DNA of 64,000 nucleotides, taken from positions 1,674,001 to 1,738,000 of the forward strand of contig CM007990.1 in NCBI GenBank assembly GCA_002189035.1. Reading direction: 5' to 3'. Positions 6,065 to 56,416 of the stretch are shown one piece after another. Under the pieces are notes generated by a model. The model ran no database searches, was not told the origin of the DNA, and worked only from the letters and a program-made list of their open reading frames with translations. Positions within the stretch are counted from its first letter, which is position 1; each line of letters opens with the position of its first letter. Position numbers and translations under genes: made by a program. Source of the stretch: Utricularia gibba. Lineage: Eukaryota > Plantae > Magnoliophyta.

Positions 6065-6310
6065 AGAAACTGTCGAAATAATAAAATAAAATTGTATCCA
6101 TAGGAAATTGTTATTGAAATTTTTTTTCAAAAAAATGACTTAAAAGACCAAAAATAAAATGAAAGATTAGTTTTAAAACTATAAAGAAAAATGACTTTAG
6201 ATTTAGGATCCAGCTTATTTAAAACTTGTCCAAATTTGTGTATGTAAACCTTGAAAACTGAGATGTTTGCACAAGTTTTGGAGGTGTTATTCTAAAATAA
6301 TACTACTCAT
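6065..6310. repeat. Dispersed AT-rich repeat, copy 1 (direct copy at ~48290-48530)
   Basis: Shared collinear blocks cataggaaattgttatt, aaaactataaa, tttagatttaggatc, aaacttg, taaaccttga, tgtttgca, tgttattctaaaataatac in both copies; ~75-80% identity by eye. Confidence 0.7.
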
Positions 6311-10676: not shown

Positions 10677-10679
10677 AAT

Positions 10680-10691
10680 TGGTATTAGAGC
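10680..10691 (+). other. Primer binding site (tRNA-iMet type)
   Basis: TGGTATTAGAGC, 3 nt after the LTR, one mismatch to canonical TGGTATCAGAGC. Confidence 0.9.
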
Positions 10692-10733
10692 TCGTTATTT
10701 TCTCTTCTGGGATTTATAATCAAAGTGCAAAGT

Positions 10734-13700
10734 ATGGAGGAATCTTTTGGGATGGTCAAATTGAATTCCAAGAATTATCCTCTTTGGAGTTCTAAGATGA
10801 AGTTTGTATTAATTTGTAAAGATCTCTGGAATCCTGTCAGATATGGAAGCAAGAAACCAGAGAAAACATCTGATGATGATTGGAAATTGCTGCATCTTAA
10901 GGCTTGTGCATATATTCTTCTATGCATTGATAATTCTTATCATTGCAAATTCAAGGACTGTGATGAAGATGCGGAAGCATTATGGAAGAAAATTCAGGAC
11001 ACCTTTCGACCATCCAATGCTCTCAACAAAATCATGTTAGAAAAGAAGCTTGTTGACTTAAAATATAAGGATGGTGAGAGCATGGAACAACACATTGGAA
11101 ACTTCAAGGAAATCATTGATGAAATGGCATCGGTAAAAATGAATATGGAGGATGAAACCCAAGCTATAAAGCTGCTACATTCATTGCCTCCCAGCTGGGA
11201 CATTCTTGTAATAACTCTGAGTAATATTGGCTAAGAAAGCCTTGTGTATGACAACATGGCCAATGTTTTATTACAAGAAGAAATAAGAAGGAAAGGGGCA
11301 AGCAATGAAAATAAGGGCTCGTTAGCTGCTGTTGAACACAAAGGAAATGCTGGTAACTGGAAAAAAAATTACAAGAACAAGAAAAATTGGAAGGATAAGG
11401 GACAACAATCTGGAGAAAATCCATCAGTTAAATCCTCCGAAACTCAAGCTGAGAAGACATGCTTCTACTGTAAGAAACCTGGACATTTCAAGAAAGAGTG
11501 TAAATTTTAGCAAAGGGCTATACTAAAGTACATGGAGAAGGAGAATTCAAGAGAAAGCAAACTGTCAATAATGGCATTTCAGTCTGTGAATCCTCTAATG
11601 GAGAAATAATGGTGCTACTATCTGAAATCTCAAGAAAGGAAAATCAGAATATTTTGCATGTAACAGTCCCACACTCTTCACCTCAAACAGACTGGGTTGT
11701 TGATTCTGCTGCCAGTTTTCATGCCACCCCTCATAGAGAATTTCTGGTCAATTATTCAGCTGGAAATCACAATAAGGTAAAGATGGGCAATTTTGCAGAA
11801 TGTGATATTCTTGGGATCAGTGATCTATATGTCACTACAAACTGTGGCTTTAGTCTTAAGCTAGAAAATGTGAGGCATGTTCCAGCCATCATATTGAATC
11901 TACTTGCAGTAAATCAATTTGATGAGGTAGGTTATTTCAGCAACTTTGGTAAACAAATATGGAAGCTGGTAAAAGGATCGACAGTGATAGCTAAAGGTAG
12001 CCTGGAAGGAACTCTGTATCATACATGCTTGGAAACTGAAATTACTGAAACCAACATAGCAGGTACCTCAGAAATCAATCACCACGTATGGCATAAAAGG
12101 ATGGGTCATCTCTCTAACAAAGGACTTGAGTACCTGAAGAAATATGAGCTTATCAACTTTAGCAAAACTCTTCAGAATATGTGTGAAGACTGCATCATTG
12201 GGAAACATCACAAGGTTAGTTTCAAAAAGGTTTTCACATAAAGCTTTGAACTATTGAATATTGTCTATTCAAATGTTGGGGGGTTTATTGAACAAGCCAC
12301 TGAGTGGGGGAAGAGGTTTTATGTAACATTTATAGATGATGCATCTCGAATGGTCTGGATATACCTGCTGGAAAGGAAGAGTGAAGTATTGTCATGCTTC
12401 AAAATACTTCATCCTTTATCGGAAAGACAAACTGGTAAAAAGATCAAAAGATTCAAAAGTGACAATGGTGGTGAATATTGTTCTGCAAAGTGGGAAGAAT
12501 TTTGTAAATCCATAGGGATCAGAAAAATAACTACTACCCCAAAAACCCCATAACACAACATCATTGCAGAAAAGGTTCAATTGAACCTTACTGGACAAAG
12601 TGAGAAGTATGCTGAACACTGCTAAGTTACCCAAAACCTTTTGGGGGGAGGCTATTATTACAGCTTGTTTCCTATCAAATCGATCGCCCAAAAAAGCACT
12701 GAATTACTTAACTCCGTATGAAGTATGGACAGGGAAGAAACCAAACTTGAAATTTTTAAGGATTTTTGACTGCAAAGCCTATGTTCATGTCTCAAAGGAT
12801 CAAAGGCAAAAACTTGATAATAGGTCAATCCCCTGTGTATTTCTGGGATATGGAGAAGATCAAATGGGTTATCGAGTATGGGATCCTATTGCCAACCGGA
12901 TTTTAAGATCAAGGGATGTGAAATTTCTAGAAGATCAAACTATTCAAAACATTGATGTGCAACCAGCAAGAAGGGAGGTCCAGGTATCACTCAAATCTGT
13001 TTTCTCTAACTCTGATTTTATGCAGAATCTGGACAGCACATCAGAAAATAATGAGGAGCACCAGAGGGAAGTTACTGATGCAGATAATCAGCAACTAAGG
13101 AGGTATTCTAGAACTCGGTTTCCATCCATGAGATATCCATCAGACGATTATATCCTGATATCAGATGAAGGAGCACCAGAAACCTTGAAAGAAGCTCTTG
13201 TTATGATAGATAAACAAAAATGGTTGGATGCTATGAAGGATGAGATGAATTCTCAACTGATTAATGATACATATGATCTAGTTTCACTACCTGCTGGCAA
13301 GAAGACACTAGAAAGTAGATGGATTTTTACTCTCAAGAAAAATGCTGATGGATCTACCAAACACAAAGCTAGGATTGTAGTTAAAGGATTTAGACAACAA
13401 GAAGGAGTGGATTTTGACGAAATCTTCTCACCAATGGTAAAGCTTGTCAATGTCAGGTTAATCTTAGCTCTAACTGCACACTTTGATTGGGAACTCGAGC
13501 AACTGGATATCAAAACTGCCTTCTTACATGGTGATCTCAAAGAAGAGATTTATATGAAGCAGATTGAAGGCTTCATTCAGAAGGGGCAAGAGCACTTGGC
13601 ATGTAAACTAAAAAGGAGTCTTTATGGACTCAAGCAGGCTTCTAGACAATGGTATTTGAGGTTTGAAAGCTTTATGACATCCCAACAATTTCAGAAAACC

Positions 13701-14721
13701 AATGGAGATCAATATGCTTACTAGAGAAAATATGGTTCTAATGATTATCTATTTTTGCTCCTGTACGTAGATGGCATCTCCAAATAAGGTGAGAATCGTC
13801 CAGCTAAAGAAACAAATGGCCTCTGAATTTAGTATGAAGGATCTCGGTTATGCCCAAAGAATTTTAGGAATTAACATTACCCGAGATAGATTAAAGAAGA
13901 CATTGTCCCTCTCACAGGAGAGGTATATTGAGCAGCTGTTAAAAAGGTTCGGATTGAGTGATGCAAAGGCTGTGATGGGACCTGTGCCATCACACCTTAA
14001 ACTATCAAAAGAAATGTCCCCGAAAACTGAACAAGAAATGCTGCATATGAAGGATCAGCCTTATGCTTCTATGGTAAGTTCAATTATGTACCTTATGGTA
14101 TGTACTAGGCCAGATATAGGATTTGCCTCCAGCATTGTTAGTAGATACATTTAAGACCTTGGCAAGCAACATCTGGAAAGTGTAAAGTGGCTATTACGGT
14201 ACCTAAAAGGGACTAAGGATTGCAAGCTCTCTTACAAATTAGACTCTATAATTCCTAGAATCTATATTGATGCAGACTTGGGCGGAGATACTGACACTAG
14301 AAGGTCAACTACAGGCCTGGTTACCATAGTTGCTGGTGGAGCTGTAACTTGGAGCTCAAAACTTCAAAAGGTTATTGCATTGTCTACGACAGAGTCTGAA
14401 TACATGGCCTTGACTGAGGCCATCAAAGAAGCCTTGTGGACAGGAAGGATACTGTCAGAATTGGGATTGTCTGAAGGGAGACCTCTAGTACTCTGTGATA
14501 GTCAAAGTGCAATACACTTGAGAAAAAATTCTACCTTCCATGCCAGAACTAAGCATATTGACATGAGTTGGCATTGGATACGAGAAGTGTTGAGAAGTGA
14601 TGAAATCAAACTAGAGAAGGTAGACACAGAAAGTAATGCAGCTGACATCCTTACCAAGTTGCTCTCATCTTCAAAGCATAAGTGTTGCATGAAGATGATG
14701 GGTCTCATAGTTACCGGATGA
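10734..14721 (+). pseudogene. Copia gag-pol polyprotein pseudogene (stops and frameshifts)
   Basis: Seven ORF fragments: gag; CFYCKKPGHFKKEC Zn knuckle; protease WVVDSAASFH; WHKRMGH; integrase FIDDASR/SDNGGEY; RT QLDIKTAFLHG; RNase H CDSQSAI/NAADILTK. Confidence 0.93.
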
Positions 14722-14742
14722 TCCAACTAACAGATTTCAGCT

Positions 14743-14753
14743 GAAGAAGGGGA
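14743..14753 (+). other. Polypurine tract of Copia element 1
   Basis: GAAGAAGGGGA immediately before the 3' LTR. Confidence 0.85.
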
Positions 14754-14755
14754 TT

Positions 14756-15310
14756 TGTGGGCTGGAGATGCTAATAAGACAGCCCAATAATCTAGCTGAA
14801 ATGGACTCTGCCCAATATCAGAATGAACAATTGATTGGACCTCGACGGTTATGAAAATAACTGAAAGAAAGAAGAAAAACGCAGTTTTGGCTCTGCCTCT
14901 TGTGGTAGTTGCACAGAGTAGGAAGTTCAGAAGAAAAGAAAGGCAGGAGCAATTTTCTTTTTACTCAGATTATCCCGATGACATTTCGATCTTGATCAAA
15001 TAGAAGAGAGGACGACAACCAATTCTCCTTAAGGTTTTTGTTCCTTTATGAATCTGGTTGTATTAGTTTGCTTGAATATTCAAGCTGATTTCAGAGCTGT
15101 TTTGCTCTTGTACTCAGACGTTGCTTTAGTGAAGTTTCTCAGACCTGGTGAGGATTCACCCATGGTTTTTTCCCATAAGGGTTTCCACGTTAAAAATTGC
15201 CTTGTGTTCTTTACTGCTTTAGCAAAAGAAGAGAAAATCAATTAATCAAGATCAGGCGTGTTCTTGCTGTTTGGCAGTTTTTGGTGTTCTTTGAAGTTTT
15301 TGATCCTAAA
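14756..15310 (+). repeat. 3' LTR of Copia element 1 (555 bp; terminal CA mutated to AA)
   Basis: Begins TGTGGGC, ends GATCCTAAA, followed by TSD CGAGG. Confidence 0.95.
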
Positions 15311-22215: not shown

Positions 22216-25200
22216 AAAAAATAAAGCAAGAATCAACTGGATAGCATATATTTGCATAGTAATTTTAGAATTAATGTGTTGTTTAATGAAATTAGATGTT
22301 TTTATGTGAATGAAAAACAAGATTAAATCAATGATTTCATCCACCATAAATTTTAATGCTGATTTTTAAAGTCTTAGTGAAAATTTTCTCAAAATTATCA
22401 AATCAAGTTCTACATTTAAAATTAGTGGGATATGGATAACTTTATAAAACGAAGGAGATGTATTACATTTAAAATATCTACCAACATTAAAAAAGAAAAA
22501 TGGAAGGAGACTTTTGATAGGGGATAGAATTGATAAACACCCAAAAAAAACGGAAAGAAAAAGAGATATAGTACATACAATTGCCAAGGAAAGGAAAGAA
22601 AAAAAAGAGAAAATGAAGGTGTTTTTACATAACCCATAAGAACATTTTATCAAGGAAACAAATTTAAGAGAGATAAAGATGTGAGGAAAATGAAGAAATC
22701 ATAGAATGAGGAATAAGAGAGAGTATCTTCTTTCAATCCCAAAAATCAGGAAATCGCTTTTAAATTAATACTGTTCCAAACTAAGACCAACATCATTGGA
22801 GTAAAACTTGAGTAATTCACAATTTTCTAGATTTGAACAATTTGTTTATGCTTGTTGATTTACTTTGGTGATAGCACTTATGAACTCTTTTCTACTTTCA
22901 TTTTTTGAAGTTAGAATGTTTCAATTTTGATGAATGGTTTTTTCATGTTGTTTCCTTAATAAATTTTACTAGAAAGACATAAAATACAAATAAAAGTAGT
23001 AGAATTTCGATCGCAAAGAATTTAAATTTTATGAGAAGTGAAGTTTCTAATCTATTACAAATTATCACGGTTTTGTAAAATAGATTTAAATAAGAGAGTA
23101 GCATGCTTTAATTTGATTCTAAACTGTCTTATTCTCAATTATGTTGTTTAAGTATCATGCTTTAATTTTTTTGAAATAGCATGGAAGGAAATAGAAGTTG
23201 GTACATGCATTAACAAAGAAGTAGGTTACCTTAATCATATATTATTCTTTAGATACTATTAGAATTATGAATTTTCATTCTGAGGGCAAGTATGATTTAA
23301 ATATGAGAAAATTTGTTAAAGTATGATTTTATTATTATCTTGTGTATTTTTTATATTTAAATATGATTAACGTTCTTAGATTAAGTATATAATATAAGTT
23401 TTAGACAATCTATTTGAGCCATGGTTCGATCAGGTTAAATTTGAACCGGTATTTTAGTGGTTTGGATCTAGTTATAGTTTTTTACTTTTCTAATATTTAC
23501 CTTATGAAAATGGTTTAGAATAAATAGAAGAGATGTTATAAATGTTTGAATGTATATTAATAATTATTTGAATGAGATATGGAAGGATTAAGATGATTTT
23601 AATAAAGACTTTTAATGTAATTGCATCAAATGTTTACAGATATGCTTTTAGTTTCTATATTTTCAATATTTTGATACATTAAATTATGATTTTATAATTA
23701 TATTCTAATATTTTTAAAATATAATTAAAAATTAATTAACTTGGTAACCCATTCTAAAAAGGATTCAACTTAAAATCATAACTAAATAGTTCAATGAGTT
23801 TAACCTATTTGTAAGTTTTACTTATATTTGAGGAATTATCATTTTTATTATGTTTTACTAATTTTTTAAAAAATTTAATTATGTTTGAAATGTGTGGTTA
23901 GAGAGGTACATGTGACATAAAATTGAAAAATGAGACATTACAAGTTTTGCAAACAAGATTCTCTTCAAAAAAAACATCTTCTATGATTTTAGGAAGAACA
24001 TAGAGTATTAATGATATGCTTTGATGTGTAAGACATATTTGTAACTGACATAAAAAATGATGATTACATTATAGTATCAGATCAACATTAAAGTTCAAAA
24101 GCATTAGTAGAATTTATGGGTCAGCAAGTGTAGATAAAAGAATATTTTATCTTTTTAGTTCTTAATTGAGATTTGGATTTTTCATTTATCATTAGTTTCA
24201 ATTTCAGTTTCATGTTTTGTATGACAGTTCACGGTTAAATCCTTTGTTTCTAGGTTGAGAGACTTCTCTTTATATATTTCATGAATAATTATTTATTTCT
24301 TCCATGAATTCGATTGAGCTTCACATGTCTTTGTGTAAATACATTACAAGCTTTGTGTAATGCCCCCAATTCAAGATTTATTAGTAGTTGATCATTGCTT
24401 ACGAGTTTTAAAGAGTAGTAAAGTAAACAACACAAATTCACATCTTCTCGGGTTTCACATGTATCTGCATCAATATATTAAAGCATTTTATTTGTAACCA
24501 TACCCCAAGACACTGGACAAATGCCACCTTCATATTTGGACTATTTGATTATTGGCAATATTCTGGCATACATGTCTAATTGGATCGTAAAATTACTTCA
24601 TGGTTAGATCTTTTATCTTTTCATTTATCCAAAGAGAAGCTACATGAGTCAATTCTCATATCTTCATATCTTATTAGAAGAGAGTGTAAGAGAATGTAAG
24701 TAATTAATTATTCATATAAAAGGGCACCTAAGAGAATCAGATACAAGTAGAAATAGGATGAACATAATTGAAAATTATTCCAATCACAAGAATAATACTT
24801 TTACTTAAGATTAATTACTTAAGTTTCTTTCATTTTTTAACTTTACGATCCAGTTTACTTAAAATTGTCATGAGAACTATCGCAAAAAGAGGACGGTACT
24901 GCCACACTATAAAAACACTCCCATGCATTTGCTATGGTAATCCTTATTTAACCTATGCGTGCATTGGTAAACATTGCCTGGCCACACCATGCCATCCCAT
25001 GTGCTGCTATCTGACTCACCACCTGTATGGAAATGTAAGTGGATCAGTCCTCATACTTGTTTGCAACACTATTTCCCAACTACAAGTCGTAAGAGGAATG
25101 AAATAAAAGGAATACTGCATATTGAATGGTGTCGGGTCGTGCACTATAGCTGTCATACTACCGCCTGTGGTTATTGACATTTGGGACTATCATTTATGGA

Positions 25201-40467: not shown

Positions 40468-41631
40468 GCCATGAGGATGAACAACTACTTGCTGGCTCTT
40501 GTTCTACTTAGTTTTGTGTGACCATGTGCTGTACATTGCTGCTGGCTTGTGGTTGTTGCCTTCTTCCTTCCCTAGTGTCGTTTACTGAGGGTAAATCGTC
40601 ATTTTTCTCTATTTGGTTTCAGTTTCAAATACGATGTTTTTTATTTTTGTTATGTGACCACATAGACCAACTGCATCAACAGAATTGAGTCACACGAGAG
40701 TGCTGAAGGAACCACATGGCTAATATATGCAACCAACCCTTATTTTAAATGTTTAAAACGGTAGACTATGCAGGCCTCTGTGGCCCCTGGTGGCCACTAC
40801 CAGAAGGGCAAAAGGTAGGGACTGGTTCTGGATTCAGCGACCATCAAGCAGTGTCTTGTTCTGCCATCGTACGCCAACCGAGCTGCCGAAGTACTGCTAT
40901 TTGACAGGGAACTCACTCAGCATTTAGGGGCTGGAAAACAAAGTCATTTGTCATTATTATTACACGCAAATCATCCAAGTGCTGATTCACACTTCCGAAA
41001 TCCGAAAAAAATCTTACATGCGATTTCCACCCATAACAGATATTATTTGGGTGCAACTTAAGAAGAGGGCTTGTTCTAGTTTTGATCGAGATGGAGTTAC
41101 TGAAGGAGCAGATTGTTTGTGAGGAAATGAAAAACACACACCTAGCATTGCTTTCCGTTTCCTTGTGGCTGCTGCTGCAACAGACCAGGAAGCTTCATTG
41201 CACGGTAACTTGTAACTATCAAATCCTACATACTCTGTGCCCAAGTACAGGCTTTTACAGAATCAGACAAAGATTAAGGCTCAGGTGACCTCGTCATTGT
41301 ATTAAGGGATGGATTCGTTTTCGGTAGATCGAGCGATTCCTCCTCGTCTCACTTGGGAATATTCCTATCTATGAAAATGGACATCAGCCATGAGGGATCT
41401 TTCTTCGCTAAATAGTCGAGATTTGGTTTTTTAGATTCCAGAACCTATTTTTCCGATTCTTCTTTGCTTGTGTTGTTTTTTTTATTTCACTTGGTCTTTT
41501 TTCTGTCCTATTATCGGATGCCGATTTTCGATACCATCAAATTCATTCGTTATTTTGTCATGTATCTGATCCTACATCATGCTATTCAGAAATCATTTGA
41601 TAATAAAGTATTAATATATTTAAATATAATA

Positions 41632-41635
<4 letters not shown>

Positions 41636-41664
<29 letters not shown>
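41636..41664. repeat. (TA)n microsatellite, ~14 units
   Basis: Directly visible TA run. Confidence 0.9.
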
Positions 41665-41666
<2 letters not shown>

Positions 41667-43360
41667 CAATTATATATTATTTTAATATTCAAAAATAAAA
41701 ATTTGAATATGTAAATATTATACATATAATTAAACTTCTTACTCTCTTCCCCTCTATTTGTGTATATCGTTCATACATATTCAAAAGATTAATATGTGAT
41801 TGATATAGCTATATAAAATTAATATACATATACTAGTTAATTAGATAATGATATAATATTATTAACTTTAATATAAATCTTCTATATCTAAGATATAGTT
41901 AATGGTCGGTGGTATGAGGAAGATGCCCTGGATTTACATTGGAGTAATCAGCCATTTATTATGAAGGATGTTGTGGCAAATGCCGGTAGCTTTTTCTGCA
42001 GAGTATTACAACACCACTGTCTCAATAGAGGCATCGGTAAGCAAGCGATGGGATGCCCATGCCTCATCTTCTGGTAACGAATGCATTGTTCTTGTGGAAT
42101 GAATCAATTAGCGATTGAGTTTACTCTACAAATATAATATGCTTCAAACTATATAATATAATACAATATAATGCGTGTGATGGCACCCTTTGCTCTTAGG
42201 AACTTCCACTGGTCCGAATGCCCCCAAAGCAATGCATAGGATTGTATTGAAAACCCAAAATTGTATGTTATTCTATCATACTCGGATTTCTGGAAATTGA
42301 AAATGATCTTCACGTCAAAATTCACATCTCGAATGACATACTCCTGAGTGTCCTGACCACTTTGTGTTTAAATATATTCTTAAATCATATTATTGTGGAT
42401 GAAAAGCATTGTTATCGAATACGTAAAGACACCCAAAATTTTAAAAATAATATAACCACTGAAATAACGCATTTAATTTCAACGTGATTGGCTAATTTAT
42501 TAATTTGTAATAAAAATGTAAAAAAAAAAAGTAATAAAATTAGCGTGCATTTTTCATTATTCCGTTTTATTATTTCTACGCCGTACATTGTGGACACGGC
42601 AAGTATTTGCACAACGTCAATGTTGGTAGTCGTTGCGTAGAGTTGACTGCAAAACCCAAAAACACGGGAACAAAAAAATTTCCAAACCTTTTTTTTTTTT
42701 TTTTGCATTTTTAACCAACTTTTTGTTTTACTGATAAATGTTTTGTAAAAAGAAATATCAATAATAAAAAATAACGTTGGAGCTTGTAATAACAAAAAAA
42801 AAAAACATTTTCTTTTATATTTTAATAAATTTCGAAAAAAATAATGCATTTTTTCATAGTTATGACCAGATGGAGCCTGCATTACTTTTCAAACCAACAT
42901 TATAGGAAATATATTTTTATATCTTATTAATAAGGCGACGGGAACGACTTTTGTAAGAGACGCAACATACTAGGAACTGCTGAAATTTCAAACTAACCAA
43001 AACGAGCGTATTTGGATTCATAGAATATAACATAAACGAGTTAAATGCCCTCAATAATGGTTTCAATTTTATTTTTTTTTAAATTTAGAATATATTGTGT
43101 AATTTAAAATTATATTAAAATAAAATCAGTTTTAAGATTGAATAGTTAAATAATATAAATGGATTTTTAAAATAAATTCGGAAATGAAACTGACAATTTA
43201 ATATGATTATTATTCTAATTAGAACCATATTTTCGTGTTCTTCAAATACTAAAAAATTGAAACAAATGGTTTCAAAGTGCAGGATTATGAATAAGAAAAA
43301 CGAGTTCAAGAAGTGGTCAAAGGAGAAAGTTCAATAAGACAAACGAGTCCACTGCGGGGT

Positions 43361-43370
43361 GTATAAATAG
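43361..43370 (+). promoter_or_regulatory. TATA box of patatin copy A (mirrored at ~53667-53676 on the minus strand for copy B)
   Basis: GTATAAATAG about 100 bp upstream of the first ATG (43460). Confidence 0.6.
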
Positions 43371-43459
43371 CACCTGGGGGGCGGCTTCCGATCATATTGT
43401 CGAACACCACGGGAGACATTCTTGGAAGAGGAGCTTTCGCCAGCATCGTCCCTGATCAA

Positions 43460-45233
43460 ATGGAATCATTCAGTTCAATCGCTCAGGTGCCGGAGTACGA
43501 TCGTTACATCACCGTCCTGAGCATCGACGGCGGTGGCGTGAAGGGAATCATCCCCGCGGCGATCCTCGAATACCTCGAGTCTCAGCTTCAGAAGATGGAC
43601 GGCCCGGATGCCAGACTAGCCGATTACTTCGACGTCATCGCCGGAACCAGCACCGGTGGTCTCGTCACGGCGATGCTCACCGCGCCGGATGCCAACAACC
43701 GCCCTCTCTACGCCGCCAAGGACATCACCCCCTTCTACTTGGAGAACTGCCCCAAAATATTCCCCCAGCAGCAGTAAGTAGCGAACCACCTTTTTCCGAG
43801 TACATATCTTCTATTTTACTGCTCTTGAGGATCACGGTTTGTATCATCGTTTATCAGAAGCTGGATTCCCTTTGGGAGGGTGGTGAAGTCGCTAATGGGG
43901 CCGCTGTATGACGGCAAGTATCTTCACAGCTTGTTGAAGGAAAAGCTGAAGGACACGAAGCTGAGCCAGGCCTTGACTAATGTCGTCATCCCTGCCTTTG
44001 ACATCAAGCGTCTGCAGCCTGTATTCTTCTCCTCCTACGAGGTGTGTTCTCCATTTTCCTTCTCCCAGCGAACCAATTCTTGTTTCTAAAGCAGGTTGTT
44101 AGGTCAGGTGATTCAAATAGTGTCTTTTCTTTGGGCAGGCAAAGAGATCACCTCTTATTGACCCGAAGCTGTCGGATGTCTGCATCAGTACCTCTGCAGC
44201 TCCGACCATCTTTCCTGCGCACGAGTTCACCACCTCCGATGGAAACGGCAACACTCGCGATTACAATCTCATCGACGGCGGTGTCGCAGCGAATAATCCG
44301 GTGAAGAACAGATCCTCCTCTTCATCCAAACATGAAAGATTCACCCTTTTGCTGACTACTCTATCTTGTGTGCTTCCACAGGCTCTGATTGCCATATCAA
44401 ATGTGACCAGACAACTGATCCGCAGCGAAACCGACTTCTTCCAAAGGGCCCCCATGGACCAGCCCCGTCTCCTTACCTTGTCCGTTGGGACCGGAGTCGC
44501 TCGGCTCGAGGAGAAGTACGATAGCAAACAGGCGGCGAAATGGGGCATCATCGACTGGATGCGCCACGGCAACAACACGCCGCTGTTCGAAATCCTCAGC
44601 CAAGCAAGTGCAGACATGGTGGACTTCCACACTACCATGGTCTTCCAGGCTCTCTACTCGGAGATCAATTACCTTAGAATTCAGGTATATATCCTCTCAT
44701 GTCACACTCTCAATTACCTTTCGACATTTTTCACGATGGCTGCGTCGTCTGCAGGATGATCAACTGAGCGGGAGTGAGGATTCAGTGGACCTGTCTACTG
44801 CGGAAAACCTGCAACGGCTTGTGAAAATTGGGCAGCGGCTGCTGACGAACCCGATTTCCAGAGTTAACTTGGACACCGGGTTGACTGAGCCGGTCACCAC
44901 TGATCTCACCAATAAGGATGCTCTAAGCAGGTACCCTTTCGCATCAAAATCCACCCAGATCACTCCATCAATCCAAATAGGAGGATTCATCCGTTGACAT
45001 TTCTGGGTTTCTTCAGGTTCGCTCGGCTATTATCGACTGAAAGAAGGCTAAGGGGAAACGGACGGGACGAAGCTGCAGGAGGGAATGGCAGAGTCTCCAG
45101 GGGAAGAGTTGGAGTTGCAGCAGCTGCAAAGTGCAAGATGATGATGAAACTGAAGCCAGCCATCAACTTCACAGCCATGAACCCAAGGCTTTATCACGTG
45201 GCGTCGACTGCACCAATCAAAGCCTTTTTCTAG
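43460..45233 (+). CDS. Patatin-like phospholipase A (pPLAII class), copy A, 6 exons, 451 aa
   Basis: Exons 43460-43773, 43858-44041, 44139-44300, 44382-44684, 44755-44930, 45017-45233. Intact SIDGGG oxyanion motif, AGTSTGG (catalytic Ser) and [11 protein letters not shown] (catalytic Asp). The track start at 43397 is TTG; the first ATG is 43460. Confidence 0.95.
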
Positions 45234-45794
45234 AACAGAATTTGGTTCATTCCATTAATTTGTTGATTCATTATCATGCATTCGATTTCAGCGCAACTGC
45301 TGCATCGCTGCTTATACATTTGTTCTTCCAACTTCCATATCGTGTATGTGATTCACACTCAAGGGGGTTCTAGTACATTTATTTTCTTGTAGAATATTTT
45401 TTCATCATGTTTCAGTTATATCTGTTTTATGATGGGAAGTATTTAGACTAGGGATAGTTAGAGAAATTTTGCTTCGTCAAATGACATTGTTGTAGAGGAG
45501 CTAAATGCTTTTTAATTATCGTAGTTAATGTTTTTGCATTCTTTTGTATGGAGAACTATTCTCCCACTGTATCTAGAGAATGCGAAAACTACAAGGAAAC
45601 ATAAAAAACTAGTAAAAGATAAGCAGTATCACACAACACAAAAAGTCTAGAAAGAGAGTTCCTATACATAGCTCAATCATGGATACAAATGATGTAGATA
45701 AAACAATATATGAATATGACTATCCAAATTGTTCTTACCATGGAATTTGTATCAATTTTTTTGAAGAGGCTGCTACATTTGTGCTTACACATGG

Positions 45795-46180
45795 AATAAT
45801 CAATCTCTTTCCCAAACTTTATAGAAATGGAGAGGATTTGTGCTATCCAAATTGTTCGTGATGTAATAAAACCTGAGGTTATAGAAGGCAAACATGTTTT
45901 TGAGTGTTTTTCACTTTACAATAATAGGAGACATAAAGGAATGATTTAATACTTTCGAGTCTAGAAGCATAGCAAGCTGAATGGAGATGAAGAAAACATT
46001 TTTCGAAGGTATTCGCATTCACTCAGGCTGAAGAATTGAGAAGAAGAATTGCTAATATTTATCATTTTATAGCAGACCGCTTATGAATATTGGGATAAAT
46101 TTAACAAGCTACTTGCTAGTTGTCCTCATCATAGATATTAGAAACTCACTTTAATTAAATTTGTTCGAAGGATTATTACC
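45795..46180 (+). mobile_element. Athila-like gag fragment (degenerate)
   Basis: IINLFPKLYRNGED, *FNTFESRSIAS*MEMKKTF, YEYWDKFNKLLASCPHH. Confidence 0.65.
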
Positions 46181-46749
46181 AACCATGGAAACTCAGTTGG
46201 ATGATGTGGTTGAAGGGAGCATGAGAATACTCAATCCTACCTAAGCATTTCTGCAGATTTTCCATCTCTCAATGGCACCAAATGCTTTAATATTTAACAT
46301 CAAATAATTTAATTTAAATTTTAATTCATGTTATCCAATTTTCAATTCGACTCATTTAAATTATAAAATAAAATAACGAAGAAAATGTAAAAAAACATGA
46401 CTTGAGTTATAGATAAGTTTTTGAGCTTTTGTAGTCTTCTGTACCCACATCCATACAGAAGAAATATATGAAAGAATTTGAAAAAAATATTATGTCATTA
46501 TTAAATTTGTCATCTGTTGTGGATCAGACATGGATATAGTGAAAACCTATCCACACTCAATCCATTGGCATCCTTAACTGTTACATATACAAAGGAAGAC
46601 ATGAAACATGAAACAAACTCAAAGAAAAAAAAAAGGATTAGTCACGAAACATGGAAGGGGAGTTTTCCAATTTAGAAACAAGAAGTTTAGCAGTCAATAG
46701 TCATTATAAAATAGAAATTAAAAGTCACTAAATTCTTCCTGAGAGGAAG

Positions 46750-47330
46750 AAGAAGATGAATAGTGCAAAGAAAACGTTGAAACTAAAAAACTTGTTCCAC
46801 ACACTTGTGTTCCCCTCTAAATCTAATTGTTCAAGTTATGTATCTTGCAAGACATGTTATTTCCTGCACCGGCATAACAATTGTAGTTATTTCTTTTGTT
46901 ATCTACAACCTTATTGTGCACGTCATGCCTCATCATTAAATTCTCATTCTTCTATTAGAAATCGTGGAAAACCATTTTCTCCTTTCTTGCACACTTTTTA
47001 CCCTTACCCATTGGCAAGTTCTATCCTTTTGACTCTCATCCTCATTAAAGCATGAAAGTATTTAGAATTCTCATCTACCGCCATGTTCTTGTTTAAATTA
47101 ACTTATTGGGAGTACATAATTGCTTGATGTTTTATCAATCTCCATATATGTCTCCAATCTTCCATCTGTAATTTTTGTTCATCCTCATTTAAGTCCTGTA
47201 GTTCCACAATTAGGTCTCATTTTTTACTTTCTCCTTAGCATGTTTTAATTTTTGTTCTATAACTCCAATTATCTCTCTACTTTATTTCTTTCAACTTTTC
47301 CTTAACACTTTTCAATTTCTCTTTCAACCT
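46750..47330 (-). mobile_element. LINE (L1) ORF2 remnant
   Basis: Minus-strand KLKSVKEKLKE...DENSKYFHA...KRIEL, resembling the L1 EN-RT linker (GD.NSKYFHA). Confidence 0.5.
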
Positions 47331-47924
47331 ATAGAGAGTGTTTTGTTACAGGATTAGGATAAAATATGTTTTAACTTATTTGAGTTTATATAAAGCTGAT
47401 ATGTATTTATGTAGTATTTAGTTAGTAGGATTAGAATTGTATTTTATACCATATTTAGTTGATAGGATTTGGATATAATGGAATTATAATGTGTTAATTT
47501 ACAATTTTAACCTTTCAATTAGGGTTTATATTTTGAGAAGCAAAAATCCTCTCACATTGTTTTGCAACCATGCAGCCACAGAAGGAGAGGCAAGTGCAGC
47601 CAATGACCAAGTGTGCTCTATTACCATCAATTCTAATATTTTTCTTCTCTAAAACTTGTTTCTCACATTTATTTCAGAGAGTTTGAAGTGAAGAAAACAA
47701 AATGAGGATGAATTCCGGAAGAAGAGTGAGTGCTTCTTAATGGTTTATTAACGCTAGTGGTGAATGATGGATGGAGAAGCTAGAATGGGTTTAAGCTTAG
47801 ATTTCATGGTACTTTGGAATCATTCATTAGAAAATATCTTCCAACTACTAGTTTGAAGGTGAACCCTCATATTGAGTCTAAGGTAAAAACTCAGAAACGG
47901 AAATATTATAGATTGATAGATCTA

Positions 47925-48105
47925 TTATCACGTTCTGGAACAAGAACAAGTGATAATGATTTTGATGGATAGATTTTCTAACTACACCTATTTTATTGCT
48001 TTATTGCATTCTTTTAGTACTACTTCGGTTGCTAAAATATTTTTTAGAGAAATTTTTAAACTTCATGGACTATCAGAGTCTATTATTAATGATAGGGATA
48101 AGATA
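47925..48105 (+). mobile_element. Ty3/Gypsy integrase fragment
   Basis: IMILMDRFSNYTYFIALLHSFSTTSVAKIFFREIFKLHGLSESIINDRDK, matching the VVVDRFSK..HF...LHG.P.SIVSDRD pattern. Confidence 0.75.
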
Positions 48106-48289
48106 TTAACTGGAATATCCTAGGCCTAAACCCTGAAAATAGGTTGCATGAATTGCTAATTTCAAAAATTAAAGTGTCATAATTTGAATTATGTATGACA
48201 TTTCCGCAATGATGGTTTATTATTATAATTTTATATTTTAAATCATTGTATTGTCAGCACATAATGATGATGATTTTGCATACACAAAA

Positions 48290-48530
48290 AATGTTGAAAT
48301 AATAAATTAAAATTATTCACATAGGAAATTGTTATTAGAATTTTATTTAAAAAATAACTCAAAATGATAAAAAAAAAACAAAACAAAAGATTGATTTTAA
48401 AAACTATAAATAAAAGTGGTTTTAGATTTAGGATCTATCTTATAAAAACTTGCCCATATATGTGTATATAAACCTTGAGTACTGACTTGTTTGCATAATT
48501 TATAAGGATGTTATTCTAAAATAATACCAG
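48290..48530. repeat. Dispersed AT-rich repeat, copy 2 (see 6065-6310)
   Basis: Same collinear blocks as copy 1. Confidence 0.7.
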
Positions 48531-48899
48531 TTGGTAATCATTATAGTACCATCATTCATTCAGTGTGAGTATAGAATCAATTACAACAATATAGTCATTT
48601 TACCTCTTGTGATAATCCATGTTTTCCTTCTAAACTCGATTTTAACCTCTATACCTCATACTTTATAGATACTGAATATTGCTTACCAACGATGTTTGAT
48701 AAGCCTTTCTCCATAGATGCTTGAGACCAATTCGAAATTTTCCCACACTTCGTTATCGTTATGTGGTATGCCAAGTAGATTCCCTAATGATGGTGCTTGA
48801 CTAAGAGGTAATAATTGTCTCCAGTGAAAACCAAGATGTTCTATTTGCGATATCTAATAATTTCGATAATTGTATGTCCCTCCTTGATTCTATTAGTAG

Positions 48900-50950
48900 A
48901 CATTGCCTTCTTCCATAGGAATTTCATGAATTCTTAGTCCTGGATCAACATGAGATGGCATTGAATTTGAAACTTCTTGATATCCTTTCTTTTGTTGAAG
49001 CAAGACTTAAAGTTCAGACTTCAACGTGCCAATTATTGTTGGAAGTTGAGCCAATACTTATGAGTTGCCTACTCAACAAACCGCTTTCATTGTTCCAACA
49101 TTTCCTCGAGGTGGTCTATAGGAGTTGTCATAACAGTGGGTTGTGGAATAGGAATTTGCGGCCATTTGTTCAATTAGTAATGGTTCTCTAATATTGATCC
49201 ATTACAAGCGGCATCCATCTATTCATGGATCATATAGGAGTCAATCCTTCATAAAAATGCTGCAGGATTTGGCTTTCAATGAGTCCATGCTATGGGAAAA
49301 AATTGCGGATTCAGTTAAAGCGATAATAATACTCTTGCAAATTTTTTCCTTCGCTTTGCATCATAGTGGTCAAGGCTCTCCTTCCAATTGAAGCTCTTCC
49401 TAGTGGTGCATGACGATCCAAAAATTTTTGAACCATTTGCTCTCATATGGAAATAAAAGATGACGGTAGCTCATAAAGCCACTCAAAAGCTCATTCAGTA
49501 AGATTGAAGGGAAAAACACGTAGCTTGACTTGATTCTCCATTGCTCCATTGGGGTGTGCAACTCACGAAGATGATGATTAGGGTCATCATTTTCCCTTCC
49601 AGTAAACTTTGGAAGTATTTGGAATAAGTAAGAACATAGCTCTTAGTCTTTTTCTTCATCAAAGATGATGCATAAGAGATAGTCAAAATGATTTGAAATG
49701 ATTTCTTCATTGATGGTTCATAATGCTAGTCCAAGGTTAACATGAGGCAACACTAGAAAGTTTCCGTGAGGGTATTCTCCTTGAGTCTCAGGAGCTATAT
49801 TTACTCCAATGGGTATATGTGTCGTCATGATTTCTCCAATGGTTAAACATGATGTCTACTCCCTCTTTTTGGCAAGAAAGGTTCATTTGACTACTTGATC
49901 TAAAGGATATATAGAACTTTTCGATAAGGTCTCAGACTTGGACGAACCCTTGATGGATCTGGCTGCATAAAAAAGAAAAATTGAGTAGAAATGGAGACAA
50001 GATAAAAAGTATAAGAAGAAGGAAAAATAAAAGAAAGAAAAATAAAAAGAAAAAAGAAAAACGAAACGAACACACACAATACCAAACACAAGAAAAAAAT
50101 CAACTCTCCAACGATAGTACCAAAAATTAGATGCATGTCATTCCACAACATATTTTAAAGAATTTTAACACATAAAACACAAAATATGTAGTATGGGTAT
50201 CGAACACAAGGAATTGTTTTTCAAGGGAAGGGAATGGTGAAGTTACACCGAATACAACTATCACGATTTATAAACGGATTTATAAAATAAAAAATGGTAG
50301 AAACATAATAATGAAGGTTGAGTAAAGAAATTGTAACCAAGTATTCTAATCCTCTAAATACTTGGTTATAAGAGTAATGAATTGATTACTTTCTCTTACA
50401 CTCTCCTACAAAGAGGCATTAGAATAGCTCGATATTACTCCCGCTTAGACGAACAGGAAGATTAGAGATCTAGCTGTCGTTCACAAGCGAATTGCGTACG
50501 TGTGTTCTAGTGTTGCCAATGACCCAATGAGTCCAGATAAGAGATTACTATCTATACATTGATCCTAAAATACGAGCATAGACAAAATGTTGTTTCCCTC
50601 AAACCAAAAGTGTGTGAGTTGATGCTTTCTATCCTGTTCCTCTTCAAAACTCATAAGTAGTGACTAGCTAATCATAAATCTTGAATAAGAGATTGTTACA
50701 AAAAGATTGTAACATAATTCCACGAAGACATATGGAACCCGATCAGATTCAAAGAAGTAATTGAGATTAATTAATGAAATGTAGAGGTGGGAGTCTCCCA
50801 ACCCAGAAACAAGAATTTCTAGTCGTGAATGAACATACAAAGCAAGAAAAGTGAAAACAAATTTTTAAAGAAAAGTTAGAGAAAAATTCTCTAGAGATAC
50901 AAACAAAGTTTGAAACTCACATTTAAACTTCAACTAAAACTCCTATTTGA
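48900..50950 (-). mobile_element. Truncated Athila-like Ty3/Gypsy element (LTR, degenerate PBS, gag)
   Basis: Minus-strand gag LPKFTGRENDDPNHHLRE, ENQVKLRVFPFNL, EWLYELP, QILQHFYEGL, DAACNGS. PBS-like sequence at 50105-50122; LTR-type GGGTATCGAACACAAGG motif near 50196. Boundaries approximate. Confidence 0.75.
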
Positions 50951-51804
50951 GTTTTTGTATTCTTATAATCCTGTTGTGGTCTTCAATGAATTGCAAGGAG
51001 CTCTTACCCTGACACTATTATATTAATGATTTTTTCTTATTCTGAAAATCAATAAGAATGTCACTTCAGAAAGATCTATTTTGTCACCATGTAATGCTCC
51101 TTTCTCAACTTCTTAAGTGCTCACCTCTAATAAAATTTCAATAAAATTAGATTAAAATATTATATAAAACACATGAATTAAGATAATTATCTTAATTTAG
51201 ATAAAATTTAAAACTTATATTATAAACTCACAATTTGACAATTCTAATTGCATTTAAACATAGAAAATGACATAAAAGATAGTAATAAAATGACATTTGA
51301 CACATGCATAGATTTTACACAAGTAATAACCTACACGTGCATGGTTGACTCTAGTATACAAATATTGATGAAAAGCAATATGAAATAAATTAAAAAATGT
51401 TGGACTCTATATTGACTTCCAAACTGACACAAATATTTTGGATCTTCCTCAATAGCTTGATACTTTGGCATTTATATAGAGATGGAGATTTATCGGGTTT
51501 TCTTGATGAGATTTTATATAAAACTTGTAGTATTTGAAAATCTTTGATTAAGTATTTATCCGCATAAGTCCACTTAAACAAGTTTATTCTAATTTGCTAT
51601 ATTTTATGTCAAAGTTATCTTGAAAAATCATAAAATACACACTTGAAACCACTTGGGTTTTGAACATCATCTTCCTTGAATGTGAATCACGAACACGATA
51701 TGGAAGTTGGACGAAAAAATGTATAAGCAGCGATGCAGCAGTTGCGCTGAAATCGAATGCATGATAATGAATCAACAAATTAATGGAATGAACCAAATTC
51801 TGTT

Positions 51805-53578
51805 CTAGAAAAAGGCTTTGATTGGTGCAGTCGACGCCACGTGATAAAGCCTTGGGTTCATGGCTGTGAAGTTGATGGCTGGCTTCAGTTTCATCATCAT
51901 CTTGCACTTTGCAGCTGCTGCAACTCCAACTCTTCCCCTGGAGACTCTGCCATTCCCTCCTGCAGCTTCGTCCCGTCCGTTTCCCCTTAGCCTTCTTTCA
52001 GTCGATAATAGCCGAGCGAACCTGAAGAAACCCAGAAATGTCAACGGATGAATCCTCCTATTTGGATTGATGGAGTGATCTGGGTGGATTTTGATGCGAA
52101 AGGGTACCTGCTTAGAGCATCCTTATTGGTGAGATCAGTGGTGACCGGCTCAGTCAACCCGGTGTCCAAGTTAACTCTGGAAATCGGGTTCGTCAGCAGC
52201 CGCTGCCCAATTTTCACAAGCCGTTGCAGGTTTTCCGCAGTAGACAGGTCCACTGAATCCTCACTCCCGCTCAGTTGATCATCCTGCAGACGACGCAGCC
52301 ATCGTGAAAAATGTCGAAAGGTAATTGAGAGTGTGACATGAGAGGATATATACCTGAATTCTAAGGTAATTGATCTCCGAGTAGAGAGCCTGGAAGACCA
52401 TGGTAGTGTGGAAGTCCACCATGTCTGCACTTGCTTGGCTGAGGATTTCGAACAGCGGCGTGTTGTTGCCGTGGCGCATCCAGTCGATGATGCCCCATTT
52501 CGCCGCCTGTTTGCTATCGTACTTCTCCTCGAGCCGAGCGACTCCGGTCCCAACGGACAAGGTAAGGAGACGGGGCTGGTCCATGGGGGCCCTTTGGAAG
52601 AAGTCGGTTTCGCTGCGGATCAGTTGTCTGGTCACATTTGATATGGCAATCAGAGCCTGTGGAAGCACACAAGATAGAGTAGTCAGCAAAAGGGTGAATC
52701 TTTCATGTTTGGATGAAGAGGAGGATCTGTTCTTCACCGGATTATTCGCTGCGACACCGCCGTCGATGAGATTGTAATCGCGAGTGTTGCCGTTTCCATC
52801 GGAGGTGGTGAACTCGTGCGCAGGAAAGATGGTCGGAGCTGCAGAGGTACTGATGCAGACATCCGACAGCTTCGGGTCAATAAGAGGTGATCTCTTTGCC
52901 TGCCCAAAGAAAAGACACTATTTGAATCACCTGACCTAACAACCTGCTTTAGAAACAAGAATTGGTTCGCTGGGAGAAGGAAAATGGAGAACACACCTCG
53001 TAGGAGGAGAAGAATACAGGCTGCAGACGCTTGATGTCAAAGGCAGGGATGACGACATTAGTCAAGGCCTGGCTCAGCTTCGTGTCCTTCAGCTTTTCCT
53101 TCAACAAGCTGTGAAGATACTTGCCGTCATACAGCGGCCCCATTAGCGACTTCACCACCCTCCCAAAGGGAATCCAGCTTCTGATAAACGATGATACAAA
53201 CCGTGATCCTCAAGAGCAGTAAAATAGAAGATATGTACTCGGAAAAAGGTGGTTCGCTACTTACTGCTGCTGGGGGAATATTTTGGGGCAGTTCTCCAAG
53301 TAGAAGGGGGTGATGTCCTTGGCGGCGTAGAGAGGGCGGTTGTTGGCATCCGGCGCGGTGAGCATCGCCGTGACGAGACCACCGGTGCTGGTTCCGGCGA
53401 TGACGTCGAAGTAATCGGCTAGTCTGGCATCCGGGCCGTCCATCTTCTGAAGCTGAGACTCGAGGTATTCGAGGATCGCCGCGGGGATGATTCCCTTCAC
53501 GCCACCGCCGTCGATGCTCAGGACGGTGATGTAACGATCGTACTCCGGCACCTGAGCGATTGAACTGAATGATTCCAT
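51805..53578 (-). CDS. Patatin-like phospholipase A (pPLAII class), copy B, same sequence as copy A
   Basis: Each position x in copy A maps to 97038-x. All six-frame ORF translations are identical between copies, and the introns checked are identical. Confidence 0.95.
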
Positions 53579-54679
53579 TTGATCAGGGACGATGCTGGCG
53601 AAAGCTCCTCTTCCAAGAATGTCTCCCGTGGTGTTCGACAATATGATCGGAAGCCGCCCCCAGGTGCTATTTATACACCCCGCAGTGGACTCGTTTGTCT
53701 TATTGAACTTTCTCCTTTGACCACTTCTTGAACTCGTTTTTCTTATTCATAATCCTGCACTTTGAAACCATTTGTTTCAATTTTTTAGTATTTGAAGAAC
53801 ACGAAAATATGGTTCTAATTAGAATAATAATCACATATATTAAATTATCAGATTCAATTCCAAATTTAAAATTTTAATTCGATTCCTTAAAATTAAGCAC
53901 ATGTTTCGTATTAATAATTTTCTAAAATAATTATATTTTATTTTTGAAAATTCAGCAATTCGGAACTGCTGCGGTTCCTAATTTGTGGCGTTTCTTATAA
54001 AAGTTATTTCCGTCGCCCTATTAATAAAATATAGGAAATATATTTCCTCTAATGTTGGTTTGAAAAGTAACAGTCTCCGTCTGATCATAACTATCAAAAA
54101 TGCATTTGTTTTCAGAATTTATTAAAATATTACAATTTTCGCTCCACATTTATTTTTTTTATTATTGATATTTCTTTTTACAAAGCATTTATCACTAAAA
54201 CAAAATGTTGGTGAAAAATGAAAAACAAAAAAAGATTTGGAATTGTTTTTTGTTCCCGCGTTTTTTGGTTTTGCAGTCAACTCTGCGAAACGGTTGACTA
54301 CCAACATTGACTTTGTGCAAATACTTGCCGCGTCCACATTGTATTTTTTTTTTACATTTTCATTACAAATTAATAAATTAGCCATTAATGTTTAAATTAA
54401 GTGCGTTATTTTAATGGTTTTAATATTTTTTAAAATTTCATGTGTCTTTACGTGTTTGAATATTAATGTATTTGAAAGCATGATAACAATGCTTTTCATT
54501 CACTGTAATATGATTTAATAATGGATTTAAACATAATAAAATTTATTATATTGTATGCAGGTGACAGTTTGAAGCATATTATATTTGTATAGCAAACTCA
54601 ATCGCTAATTACTTCATTCCACAAGAACTTTTATGTTGTTTTTCAGGAGCCAAATAGCCTCCTACCCACGAGAGCGATT

Positions 54680-55102
54680 GATCATGCAATCCCGTTACTA
54701 CCAGGGCGGTACCAAAGCGTTACTCACCTTATTGCATTCCTCACCATCTCAGAAAAGTGTTAGAAAAAATCGTTGGTGAACTCTTAGCTGCTGATTTTAT
54801 ATACCAGAGTAGAAGTTCATTCTCTTCACCCATTTTGTTGGTTTCGAAGAAAGATGGAGTTTGACGAATGTGTATCGATTTCTGATACCTCAATATTATT
54901 TCGGTAAAACATGAATTTTACATTCTTATTATTGACGATCTCTTGAATAAAATTGCATGATTCTTAATATTTTTCAAAGCTAGATCTTCGTTCTGGTTAT
55001 TTTTAAATTAGAATGCAAGAGCAATACATTTTTAAAACCAGTTTTTCTACTCATTAGGAACACTACGAATTTCTTGTTATGTCGTTCGGTCTTACAGGCG
55101 CC
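54680..55102 (+). mobile_element. Ty3/Gypsy reverse transcriptase fragment
   Basis: DHAIPLLPG...SRSSFSSPILLVSKKDG.*RMCIDF..LN...IDDLL...FSKLDLRSGY..IRM...KTSF..H..HYEFLVMSFGLTGAP. Confidence 0.85.
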
Positions 55103-56416
55103 CTCTACGACCCGACATTGACATTGTACAAATACTTGCCGTGTGCACATTGTACGGCATATAAATAATAAAATGAAAAATGCACCCAAATTTTATCGCT
55201 TTGTTTTTTTAACACTTTTATTACAAATTAATAAATTAGCCAATAATGTTTAAATTAAATACGTTATTTTAATAGTTTTATTATTTTTTTAAATTCAGGT
55301 GTCTCTACGTGTTTGAATATTAAGGTATTTAAAAGCATGATAACAATGTTTTTCATCCACGATAATATGATTTAATAATGAATTTAAACATAATAAAATG
55401 TTATTATATTGTATTCAAGTGTTAGTTTGAAGCATATTATATTTGCATTATAAACTCAATCGCCAACTGCTTCATTCCACAAGAAGAGTGCATTCGTTAC
55501 CAGAAGATGAAGCATGCCCATCCGATCACTTGCTTTCGGTGCCTATGTTCAGAGAGAGGTGTTGTAATACTTGGCAGAAAAGCGACCGGCATTTGCCACC
55601 ACATCCTTCATAGTAAATGGATAATTGCTGCAATGTAAATCCAGGGCTTCTTCCTCATACGACTGACCATTAACTGCAAGCCAATCCTGTCGATGTGATG
55701 ACCAACAACCAATGAATTTATTTGGGTGCAACTTATCAGAAGAGTGCTTATTCTAGTTTTGATGGAGATAGAGTTATTTGATGACCCCATCCCCTATTGA
55801 AGGAGCCTTTGTGTTATACTAGGAGAATCAAGTTTAATAGAGCTACCAGGAATTGGAACTTGTTTAGAATTTAATTGTAATTTTTATATTTGAACAATGT
55901 CCTAACCTTAGATATATGTAAGCCATAATTTTTTATGTAAACACAATTTTTATCTTATGATTGTCTCACTTAGTTATTGAAGGTTTTTTTGAGTAGGAAT
56001 AAATCAAGATTTTCTTGATTTTTATTTACTGTTTTTTGACTTAAACATAAACATTTAACTGCTTAGTTAGTTTTCACTTTTCAATTTGGTCATTATCTAT
56101 TTAATATTAACGATGAAAAGTGGTAGTTGAAAAATTTATTCTATCCAATAAATCTCAAGTGAGTTGTCAAATAATCATTTCAATATAACATGACAAATTC
56201 CACTTGTCACTTTTTTATTGCTATATGAATTGGCTTTTTTGGATAGGCGAGATCACAAGTTCAGGAAAATTTATTTTTGTTTCATTATTGCTCATCCTTT
56301 CCGTAAGGTCTGAATACAAATCAGATCAAACAAAACACATGAACTAAGAATTATAGCAGCAAATAATATATTTTTTTCAAATAAACAAACAATCACTAGA
56401 CATAGATCAATCTTAT

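Follow-up and report, generated by a model that had tools for sequence, protein, structure and literature searches.

Arm-to-arm gene conversion in the palindromes of sex chromosomes has been reviewed under the title 'Why Chromosome Palindromes?' (PMC3403216). In these structures, inverted arms surround a unique spacer, intrachromosomal conversion keeps the gene copies identical, and crossing-over from one arm to the other would invert the spacer instead of removing it (PMC3403216). Y and W palindromes, which lie on non-recombining chromosomes, are >99.9% identical along the full length of their arms, which measure many kb to Mb. In plants, interlocus (ectopic) conversion acts between close paralogs, leaves a non-reciprocal tract bounded by diverged sequence, and homogenizes silent sites together with coding sequence (PMC6383267). 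Converted pairs account for 20.6% of tandem duplicates in Arabidopsis and 23.0% in rice (PMC6383267).

We compared these systems with a pair of inverted patatin-like phospholipase genes in Utricularia gibba. All three features of plant interlocus conversion are common to the patatin pair, although it differs from tandem or proximal duplicates in being inverted and convergent, and in having a tract that takes in the complete gene and its proximal promoter. The likeness to sex-chromosome palindromes extends to the inverted arms around a unique spacer, the apparent intrachromosomal conversion of gene copies, and the expectation that arm-to-arm crossing-over would reverse the spacer without deleting it. 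The original prediction had drawn a parallel with the Y chromosome, which serves as an analogy but does not hold as membership of that class, as only a gene-sized tract appears to have been homogenized rather than whole arms. Whereas Y and W palindromes exceed 99.9% identity along their entire length, the patatin arms are identical over only 2.1 kb of ~3.5 kb and otherwise 12% diverged (11–14% with many indels across the remaining ~1.3 kb per arm), and there is no indication of a sex chromosome at the patatin locus.

Our analysis covers one assembly (GCA_002189035.1) and, within contig CM007990.1, a stretch of 64 kb with an N content of 0 (hereafter the window), in which the arms were compared by repeat search, blastn, and column-by-column alignment. 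The three comparisons were concordant: positions 43204–45321 (+) and 51717–53833 (−) are reverse complements with 0 substitutions in 2,118 bp, and they differ only in the length of a homopolymer, by one G (six G at 43376–43381 on the + strand, five at the mirror position, 53657–53661). The left core comprises 256 bp 5' of the ATG, the gene in full, and the 88 bp that follow its stop codon, and the right core is its reverse complement. The 5' portion includes a TATA box (TATAAATA, 43362–43369 on the + strand, mirror 53668–53675), whose position is inferred from the consensus only; the G-run begins 7 nt past it, in the 5' leader or the region of the transcription start, and its difference in length is either the first slippage mutation after conversion or a homopolymer consensus error. 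The coordinate sum of mirrored positions is 97037 before the G-run and 97038 after it. These results agree with the original prediction, which had proposed the same reverse-complementary cores with the G-run as their only difference, a constant sum of 97038 from the start codon to the 3' end (found throughout after the G-run), and identical ORF translations and introns (six of six exons were letter-identical, and the introns were free of substitutions).

Both copies are intact, six-exon, 451-codon genes in which all introns are GT-AG and the catalytic motifs are present, and they are arranged tail to tail, converging on a 6.3-kb non-coding spacer. The left gene (43460–45233, +, from ATG to stop, based on a gene model and frame check) has exons at 43460–43773, 43858–44041, 44139–44300, 44382–44684, 44755–44930, and 45017–45233, giving a CDS of 1,356 nt (451 codons) and five GT-AG introns of 70–97 bp; the right gene (51805–53578, −) matches it letter for letter in all exons. 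Searched exon by exon, the gene gave profile matches to Pfam PF01734 for exon 1 (46.3 bits, cut-off 27.7) and exon 3 (29.2 bits), and the same two exons matched potato patatin-17 (PDB 1oxw) with E values of 8.5e-36 and 8.7e-11, respectively. Within exon 1, the oxyanion-hole motif DGGGxxG (S-I-D-G-G-G-V-K-G) and the nucleophile elbow GxSxG carrying the catalytic Ser (G-T-S-T-G) align with those of 1oxw, and the catalytic Asp motif DG[GA] in exon 3 (L-I-D-G-G) aligns with L-V-D-G-A, completing the Ser-Asp dyad. Judged by sequence, the pair are patatin-like phospholipases (PF01734) with predicted acyl-hydrolase activity. They have PF01734 and the three motifs in common with plant patatin-like phospholipase A group II (patatin-like protein 2; potato patatin-17, 1oxw), but differ from patatin-17 in their last exon, which encodes a Gly/Arg/Ala-rich tail ~45 residues longer and without a family match. 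The best protein matches to the exon-1 ORF were 73–83% identical and mostly from Lamiales and other eudicots, with no near-identical entry among the homologues found. The best named relatives over this exon were proteins named patatin-like protein 2 (73–83% identical), similarity to which is the only basis for the putative 'defence-type' label. An exact 31-mer from the core had 0 matches in metagenome contigs, and a search of exon 4 against such contigs recovered no more than two loci, both from unrelated plants and 50% identical. The window holds no third patatin copy that could serve as an internal outgroup.

Homology between the arms continues past the core on both sides, at a very different level of identity. 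On the outer side, a 4-bp indel lies exactly at 43203/43204 and is followed by 4 mismatches in 31 bp (43173–43203, +, mirror 53834–53868); on the inner side, 45322–45364 (+, mirror 51674–51716) carries 5 mismatches in 43 bp, past which identity falls to ~45–49% and homology ends. The old duplication thus stops 43 bp past the inner boundary. Pooled, the two core-touching edges have 9 mismatches in 74 bp (~12%), matching the four flank blocks located farther upstream (p = 0.11–0.14). Beyond the outer edge is an AT-rich, indel-rich zone that includes a 75-bp indel, within which positions 43003–43172 align poorly between the arms. Collinear but indel-rich blocks then extend to 41897/55675, such that the diverged upstream flanks span 41897–43172 (+) in the left arm and 53869–55675 (−) in the right. 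Both flanks adjoin the core directly and in collinear order, and no gradient of identity was seen beside the core in the arm alignments. The abrupt drop in identity originally predicted is thus a step from 0 substitutions inside the core to ~12% substitution divergence directly outside it, and the predicted reach of homology (~1.3 kb upstream, to 41897/55675, and ~45 bp downstream) was confirmed, with 43 bp measured on the 3' side. The right-arm upstream flank alone holds a local tandem duplication (54344–54627 versus 55200–55485, 89% match).

A uniformly young duplication is excluded by the diverged flanks, which are contiguous with the core and have the same divergence at its edges as farther out. 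A uniformly old duplication, the core of which was held identical by purifying selection or a low local mutation rate, would fit a core that roughly equals the functional gene unit. However, at flank divergence the chance of 0 substitutions in 2,118 bp is ~1e-107 or less (log10 P at most −107), and the identity includes silent sites. The non-coding bases of the core (5' region, five introns, and 3' region; n = 762) carry 0 substitutions where ~84–99 would be expected, for which the chance is <1e-38, and a 157-bp AT-rich promoter stretch (GC 0.325, compared with 0.30 in the flanks) carries 0 where 17–20 would be expected. Because introns, UTRs, and the AT-rich promoter stretch are identical, as are third codon positions, selection and differences in mutation rate cannot explain the step in identity, and we give this reading almost no credence.

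Alternatively, the 2.1-kb segment may have been copied separately and recently, through replication template switching or transposon-mediated capture, and have landed by chance on or beside an older, unrelated repeat shared by both sites, in which case the resemblance of the flanks would not stem from an old duplication of the gene. The right arm carries a portion of the upstream block in two copies, as mobile or duplication-prone sequence might, and the poor alignment of 43003–43172 also leans this way. Against it, the flank blocks keep their order and orientation and run unbroken into the core, and both core-touching edges consist of ~12% diverged homology, unlike the edges of a fresh insertion, with no repeat near the 3' edge. 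Moreover, no further copy of the upstream flank block was found elsewhere in the 64-kb window, and repeat, LTR, and TIR searches found neither terminal repeats nor a target-site duplication at the core borders. An independent copying event is therefore very unlikely.

We also considered whether the identity, or the duplication itself, could have been produced during assembly. Inverted perfect repeats are a familiar artefact class of long-read assemblies, so a false duplication (from haplotype mis-assembly or foldback chimeric reads) deserves mention, but it is a poor fit to a 6.3-kb unique spacer, 12% diverged and indel-rich flanks, and a local duplication confined to one arm, and we regard it as highly improbable. 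Somewhat less remote, though still improbable, is homogenization by assembly or polishing, in which cores that truly differ by up to 1–2% were written as one consensus by long-read self-correction or by polishing with short reads that map to both copies. The sole difference in the core, a homopolymer length, is typical of long-read consensus errors. Yet such a process acts only on near-identical copies and cannot take ~12% divergence to 0% with a base-sharp step on both sides; the differing G-run also shows that the copies were called independently, and gaps and Ns are absent. Even if it had occurred, a young core within old flanks would persist, and conversion would still be required. Read correction or polishing could have made the core look somewhat more perfect than it is, an effect that could only have sharpened the step in identity, not created it.

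Three things are observed directly: a step in identity, old homology that adjoins it at either end of the core, and two intact genes. The core presents the features by which conversion is recognized, namely an over-long identical tract, contiguous diverged homology on both sides, and homogenized silent and non-coding sites. We consider it likely, from the sequence of the two arms, that an inverted duplication arose long ago and that gene conversion between its two copies has recently homogenized a gene-sized core. Recent conversion within an old inversion had been predicted originally, and is supported in this one assembly by the contiguous ~12% diverged flanks and the silent-site identity of the core. 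An ancestral patatin-like phospholipase gene, with ~1.3 kb of upstream and ~130 bp of downstream DNA, would have been duplicated and inverted tail to tail long ago, after which the copies would have diverged to ~12–15% substitutions per site and accumulated many indels. Much later, a DNA break in one copy would have been repaired with its partner, on the same chromosome, as the template, by non-reciprocal interlocus gene conversion and probably through synthesis-dependent strand annealing, as we infer. The overwritten tract of 2.1 kb would begin 190 bp before the likely transcription start and finish 88 bp beyond the stop codon. Overwriting of this tract would explain why the proximal promoters, exons, introns, and UTRs of the two genes now match, whereas the distal promoter and downstream DNA keep their old divergence.

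Typical meiotic non-crossover tracts in plants are short compared with 2.1 kb, which is a point against the conversion reading. Rather than happening once and late, homogenization might have recurred ever since the duplication, an idea under which the boundaries would have frozen where the AT-rich, indel-rich flanks stopped supporting heteroduplex extension. The lack of an identity gradient beside the core counts against many events with variable end points. It is plausible that the 4-bp indel at the outer boundary and the indel-rich AT zone acted as a barrier to tract extension. Gene conversion between local plant duplicates is common, and the patatin pair is a clear but ordinary case of it. 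As a single locus it is an example of textbook quality, in which the break points are base-sharp at either end and the old homology can be followed all the way to them.

The spacer between the convergent 3' ends (45365–51673, 6,309 bp) is AT-rich (GC 0.31) and non-coding. It has no homology to the arms by repeat search or arm comparison, and searches of it for Pfam domains, Rfam families, tRNAs, and internal LTRs or TIRs detected none. Two dispersed-repeat fragments lie within it. Transcriptional read-through across the convergent, identical genes could possibly give a 2-kb hairpin RNA.

The two lipase gene copies share a coding sequence and core promoter but differ in their distal regulatory DNA, an arrangement that doubles dosage and leaves room for differing expression. 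The locus would be of wider value only when considered alongside similar palindromes of the genome, to ask if this genome is unusually active in converting inverted duplicates. The lineage is characterized by strong deletion bias, and GC-biased conversion has been proposed for it (PMC4972453). At this locus, GC3 is 0.68 in the patatin gene compared with 0.44–0.60 for seven further ORFs of host genes in the window, a faint hint that fits long-term GC-biased conversion. It seems to us unlikely that this very small plant genome contains many gene palindromes, the present locus among them, whose identity is systematically maintained through conversion from arm to arm. If true, duplicate genes would be preserved intact across the genome through inverted duplication coupled with conversion, and the raised GC3 of 0.68 in the patatin gene would be the footprint of this process.

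The two palindrome arms share a core, 43204-45321 on the forward strand and its reverse complement at 51717-53833, in which a column-by-column listing found no substitutions (divergence 0, with a 95% upper bound of 0.0014). Within the core, the arms differ only in the length of a G homopolymer, which has six bases at 43376-43381 and five at the mirror position, 53657-53661. An inverted-repeat scan of 38000-60000 recovered near-perfect abutting arm pairs (43377-45364 with 51674-53661, and 43201-43380 with 53657-53836) and a series of shorter inverted pairs of 74-94% identity further upstream; in blastn, the left arm aligned to the reverse-complemented right arm in one 2196-column segment at 99.4% identity and additional collinear segments at 80-94%. 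The scan, blastn and column listing concur with the core coordinates of the original prediction, and its single G-run difference and constant coordinate sum of 97038 (which applies after the G-run) were likewise confirmed. There is no N anywhere in the window.

Each core carries one patatin-like gene. The left gene (+ strand; ATG at 43460, stop at 45231-45233) has six exons (43460-43773, 43858-44041, 44139-44300, 44382-44684, 44755-44930 and 45017-45233) separated by five introns of 70-97 bp, all five GT-AG, and the mirrored exons of the right gene (51805-53578, - strand) are letter-identical to it. The CDS is 1356 nt (451 codons), with every exon read in phase and no internal stops. A TATAAATA box lies at 43362-43369 (+), 7 nt upstream of the G-run. 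In protein searches made with single exons, one at a time, exons 1 and 3 matched Pfam Patatin (PF01734) and potato patatin-17 (PDB 1oxw; E 8.5e-36 and 8.7e-11), and alignment to patatin-17 placed the DGGGxxG oxyanion motif, the G-T-S-T-G serine elbow and the D-G-G aspartate motif. Among named proteins, those nearest to the exon-1 ORF are annotated as patatin-like protein 1, 2 or 3 (73-83% identical), and many come from Lamiales. In both copies the last exon (mirror 51805-52021) encodes a C-terminal tail rich in Gly, Arg and Ala that exceeds potato patatin-17 by about 45 residues and has no family match. No third patatin copy was found within the 64-kb window, two metagenome scans returned nothing useful, and a literature search turned up no paper that connects patatin genes to Utricularia.

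At both core edges, divergence rises from 0% to 12% within a few bases. Mismatches on the inner (3') side begin at 45322, and 45322-45364 holds 5 in 43 bp; past 45364 arm identity drops to background (about 45-49%), so the old duplication reached only 43 bp further than the core does now. On the outer (5') side, a 4-bp indel falls precisely at 43203/43204, followed outward by 4 mismatches in 31 bp (43173-43203), then an AT-rich, indel-rich zone that includes a 75-bp indel, and farther out by well-aligned blocks that keep order and orientation as far as 41897/55675. Substitution divergence is 0.136 in 41897-42172, 0.109 in 42362-42416, 0.139 in 42415-42623 and 0.113 in 42584-42977 (0.12-0.15 after Jukes-Cantor correction). 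The two core-touching edges (9 mismatches in 74 bp, 0.12) are similarly diverged and therefore of the same age as the more remote flank blocks. The abrupt drop with homology continuing on both sides, as originally described, is a step against collinear flanks of about 12% divergence, and the identity profile is not uniform across the arms.

This profile is incompatible with a uniformly young duplication, since 0 substitutions in 2118 bp has a chance of 1e-107 to 1e-128 at p = 0.11-0.13. Selection was rejected as the cause of the identity, the 762 non-coding core bases (256 bp upstream, 418 bp of introns and 88 bp downstream) having 0 substitutions against about 84-99 expected. Mutation-rate heterogeneity also fails, given that 43204-43360 (157 bp), whose GC of 0.325 is similar to that of the flanks (0.30), shows 0 differences against 17-20 expected. 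Independent repeat insertions conflict with flanks that run unbroken and in collinear order into the core and with diverged homology at the repeat-free 3' edge, and a foldback or haplotype artefact misfits the unique 6.3-kb spacer, the indel-rich flanks and a duplication confined to one arm. Correction or polishing may have made the copies look more identical and could erase a few real differences, but it acts on copies already near-identical and cannot create the identity step; it could do no more than shift the age estimated for the conversion.

Judged from the sequence of one assembly, an old inverted duplication followed by recent interlocus gene conversion is the best-supported explanation and quite probably the right one, and the conversion originally proposed is supported by the identity step, the contiguous old flanks and the silent-site identity. 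The inverted duplication would have come first, its flanks now being about 0.12-0.15 diverged, a value above the 7% by which the paired LTRs of a Copia element in this window differ. Recent non-reciprocal repair, with one copy templated by the other, would then have reset the core; by the core's upper bound, the flanks are at least about 80-100 times older. The absence of an identity gradient beside the core speaks against numerous events whose ends varied. Because sequence divergence strongly inhibits homologous repair, continued homogenisation would be more likely than a first conversion only once the arms were 12% apart; its boundaries may have become fixed where homology was lost through indels and AT-rich slippage. 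The patatin gene has a GC3 of 0.68 (0.78 in exon 1, declining to 0.51 in exon 6), compared with 0.44-0.60 in seven other host-gene ORFs in the window; as weak evidence, this fits long-term GC-biased conversion and might be its footprint.

The two genes are convergent, their 3' ends facing a 6309-bp AT-rich spacer (45365-51673, GC 0.31) in which a search for Pfam domains, Rfam families, tRNAs, LTRs and TIRs found none. Its only content is two dispersed-repeat fragments, 48261-48527 and 50640-50856, also present at 6037-6303 (80%) and 24202-24415 (72%, inverted), respectively. In the right-arm flank alone, a local tandem duplication (54344-54627 and 55200-55485, 89%, about 856 bp apart) explains double matches in the inverted-repeat scan; its two copies are about as diverged as the arms. 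A 57-bp direct repeat of ~90% identity lies just beyond both outer palindrome ends (41043-41099, 800 bp from the left arm end, and 55718-55776, 43 bp from the right), and an (AT)n microsatellite with an AT-rich self-complementary stretch occupies 41596-41697, 200 bp beyond the outer end of the left arm. Elsewhere in the window, the Copia-type LTR retrotransposon (10120-15308; 555-bp LTRs at 10120-10674 and 14756-15308, 93% identical) is probably decayed, its gag, integrase and RVT_2 ORFs being split into pieces. A PPR protein of 582 aa, intact and encoded by a single exon (7893-9641, -), has E, E+ and DYW deaminase domains and belongs to the type that serves as an organelle RNA-editing factor.

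Converted local duplicates are common in plants, amounting to 20.6% of Arabidopsis tandem pairs and, in rice, 23.0% of tandem and 17.5% of proximal pairs (PMC6383267), and for Utricularia gibba, biased gene conversion is proposed to have helped shape the genome (PMC4972453). Arm-to-arm conversion is well described for sex-chromosome palindromes (PMC3403216). The parallel originally drawn with Y palindromes holds for this way of working; however, the whole-arm identity that defines those palindromes is absent from the patatin locus. Our results support the patatin pair as one more locus of the already known gene conversion between local duplicates, at which two genes have coding sequence and core promoter in common and differ in their distal upstream DNA.
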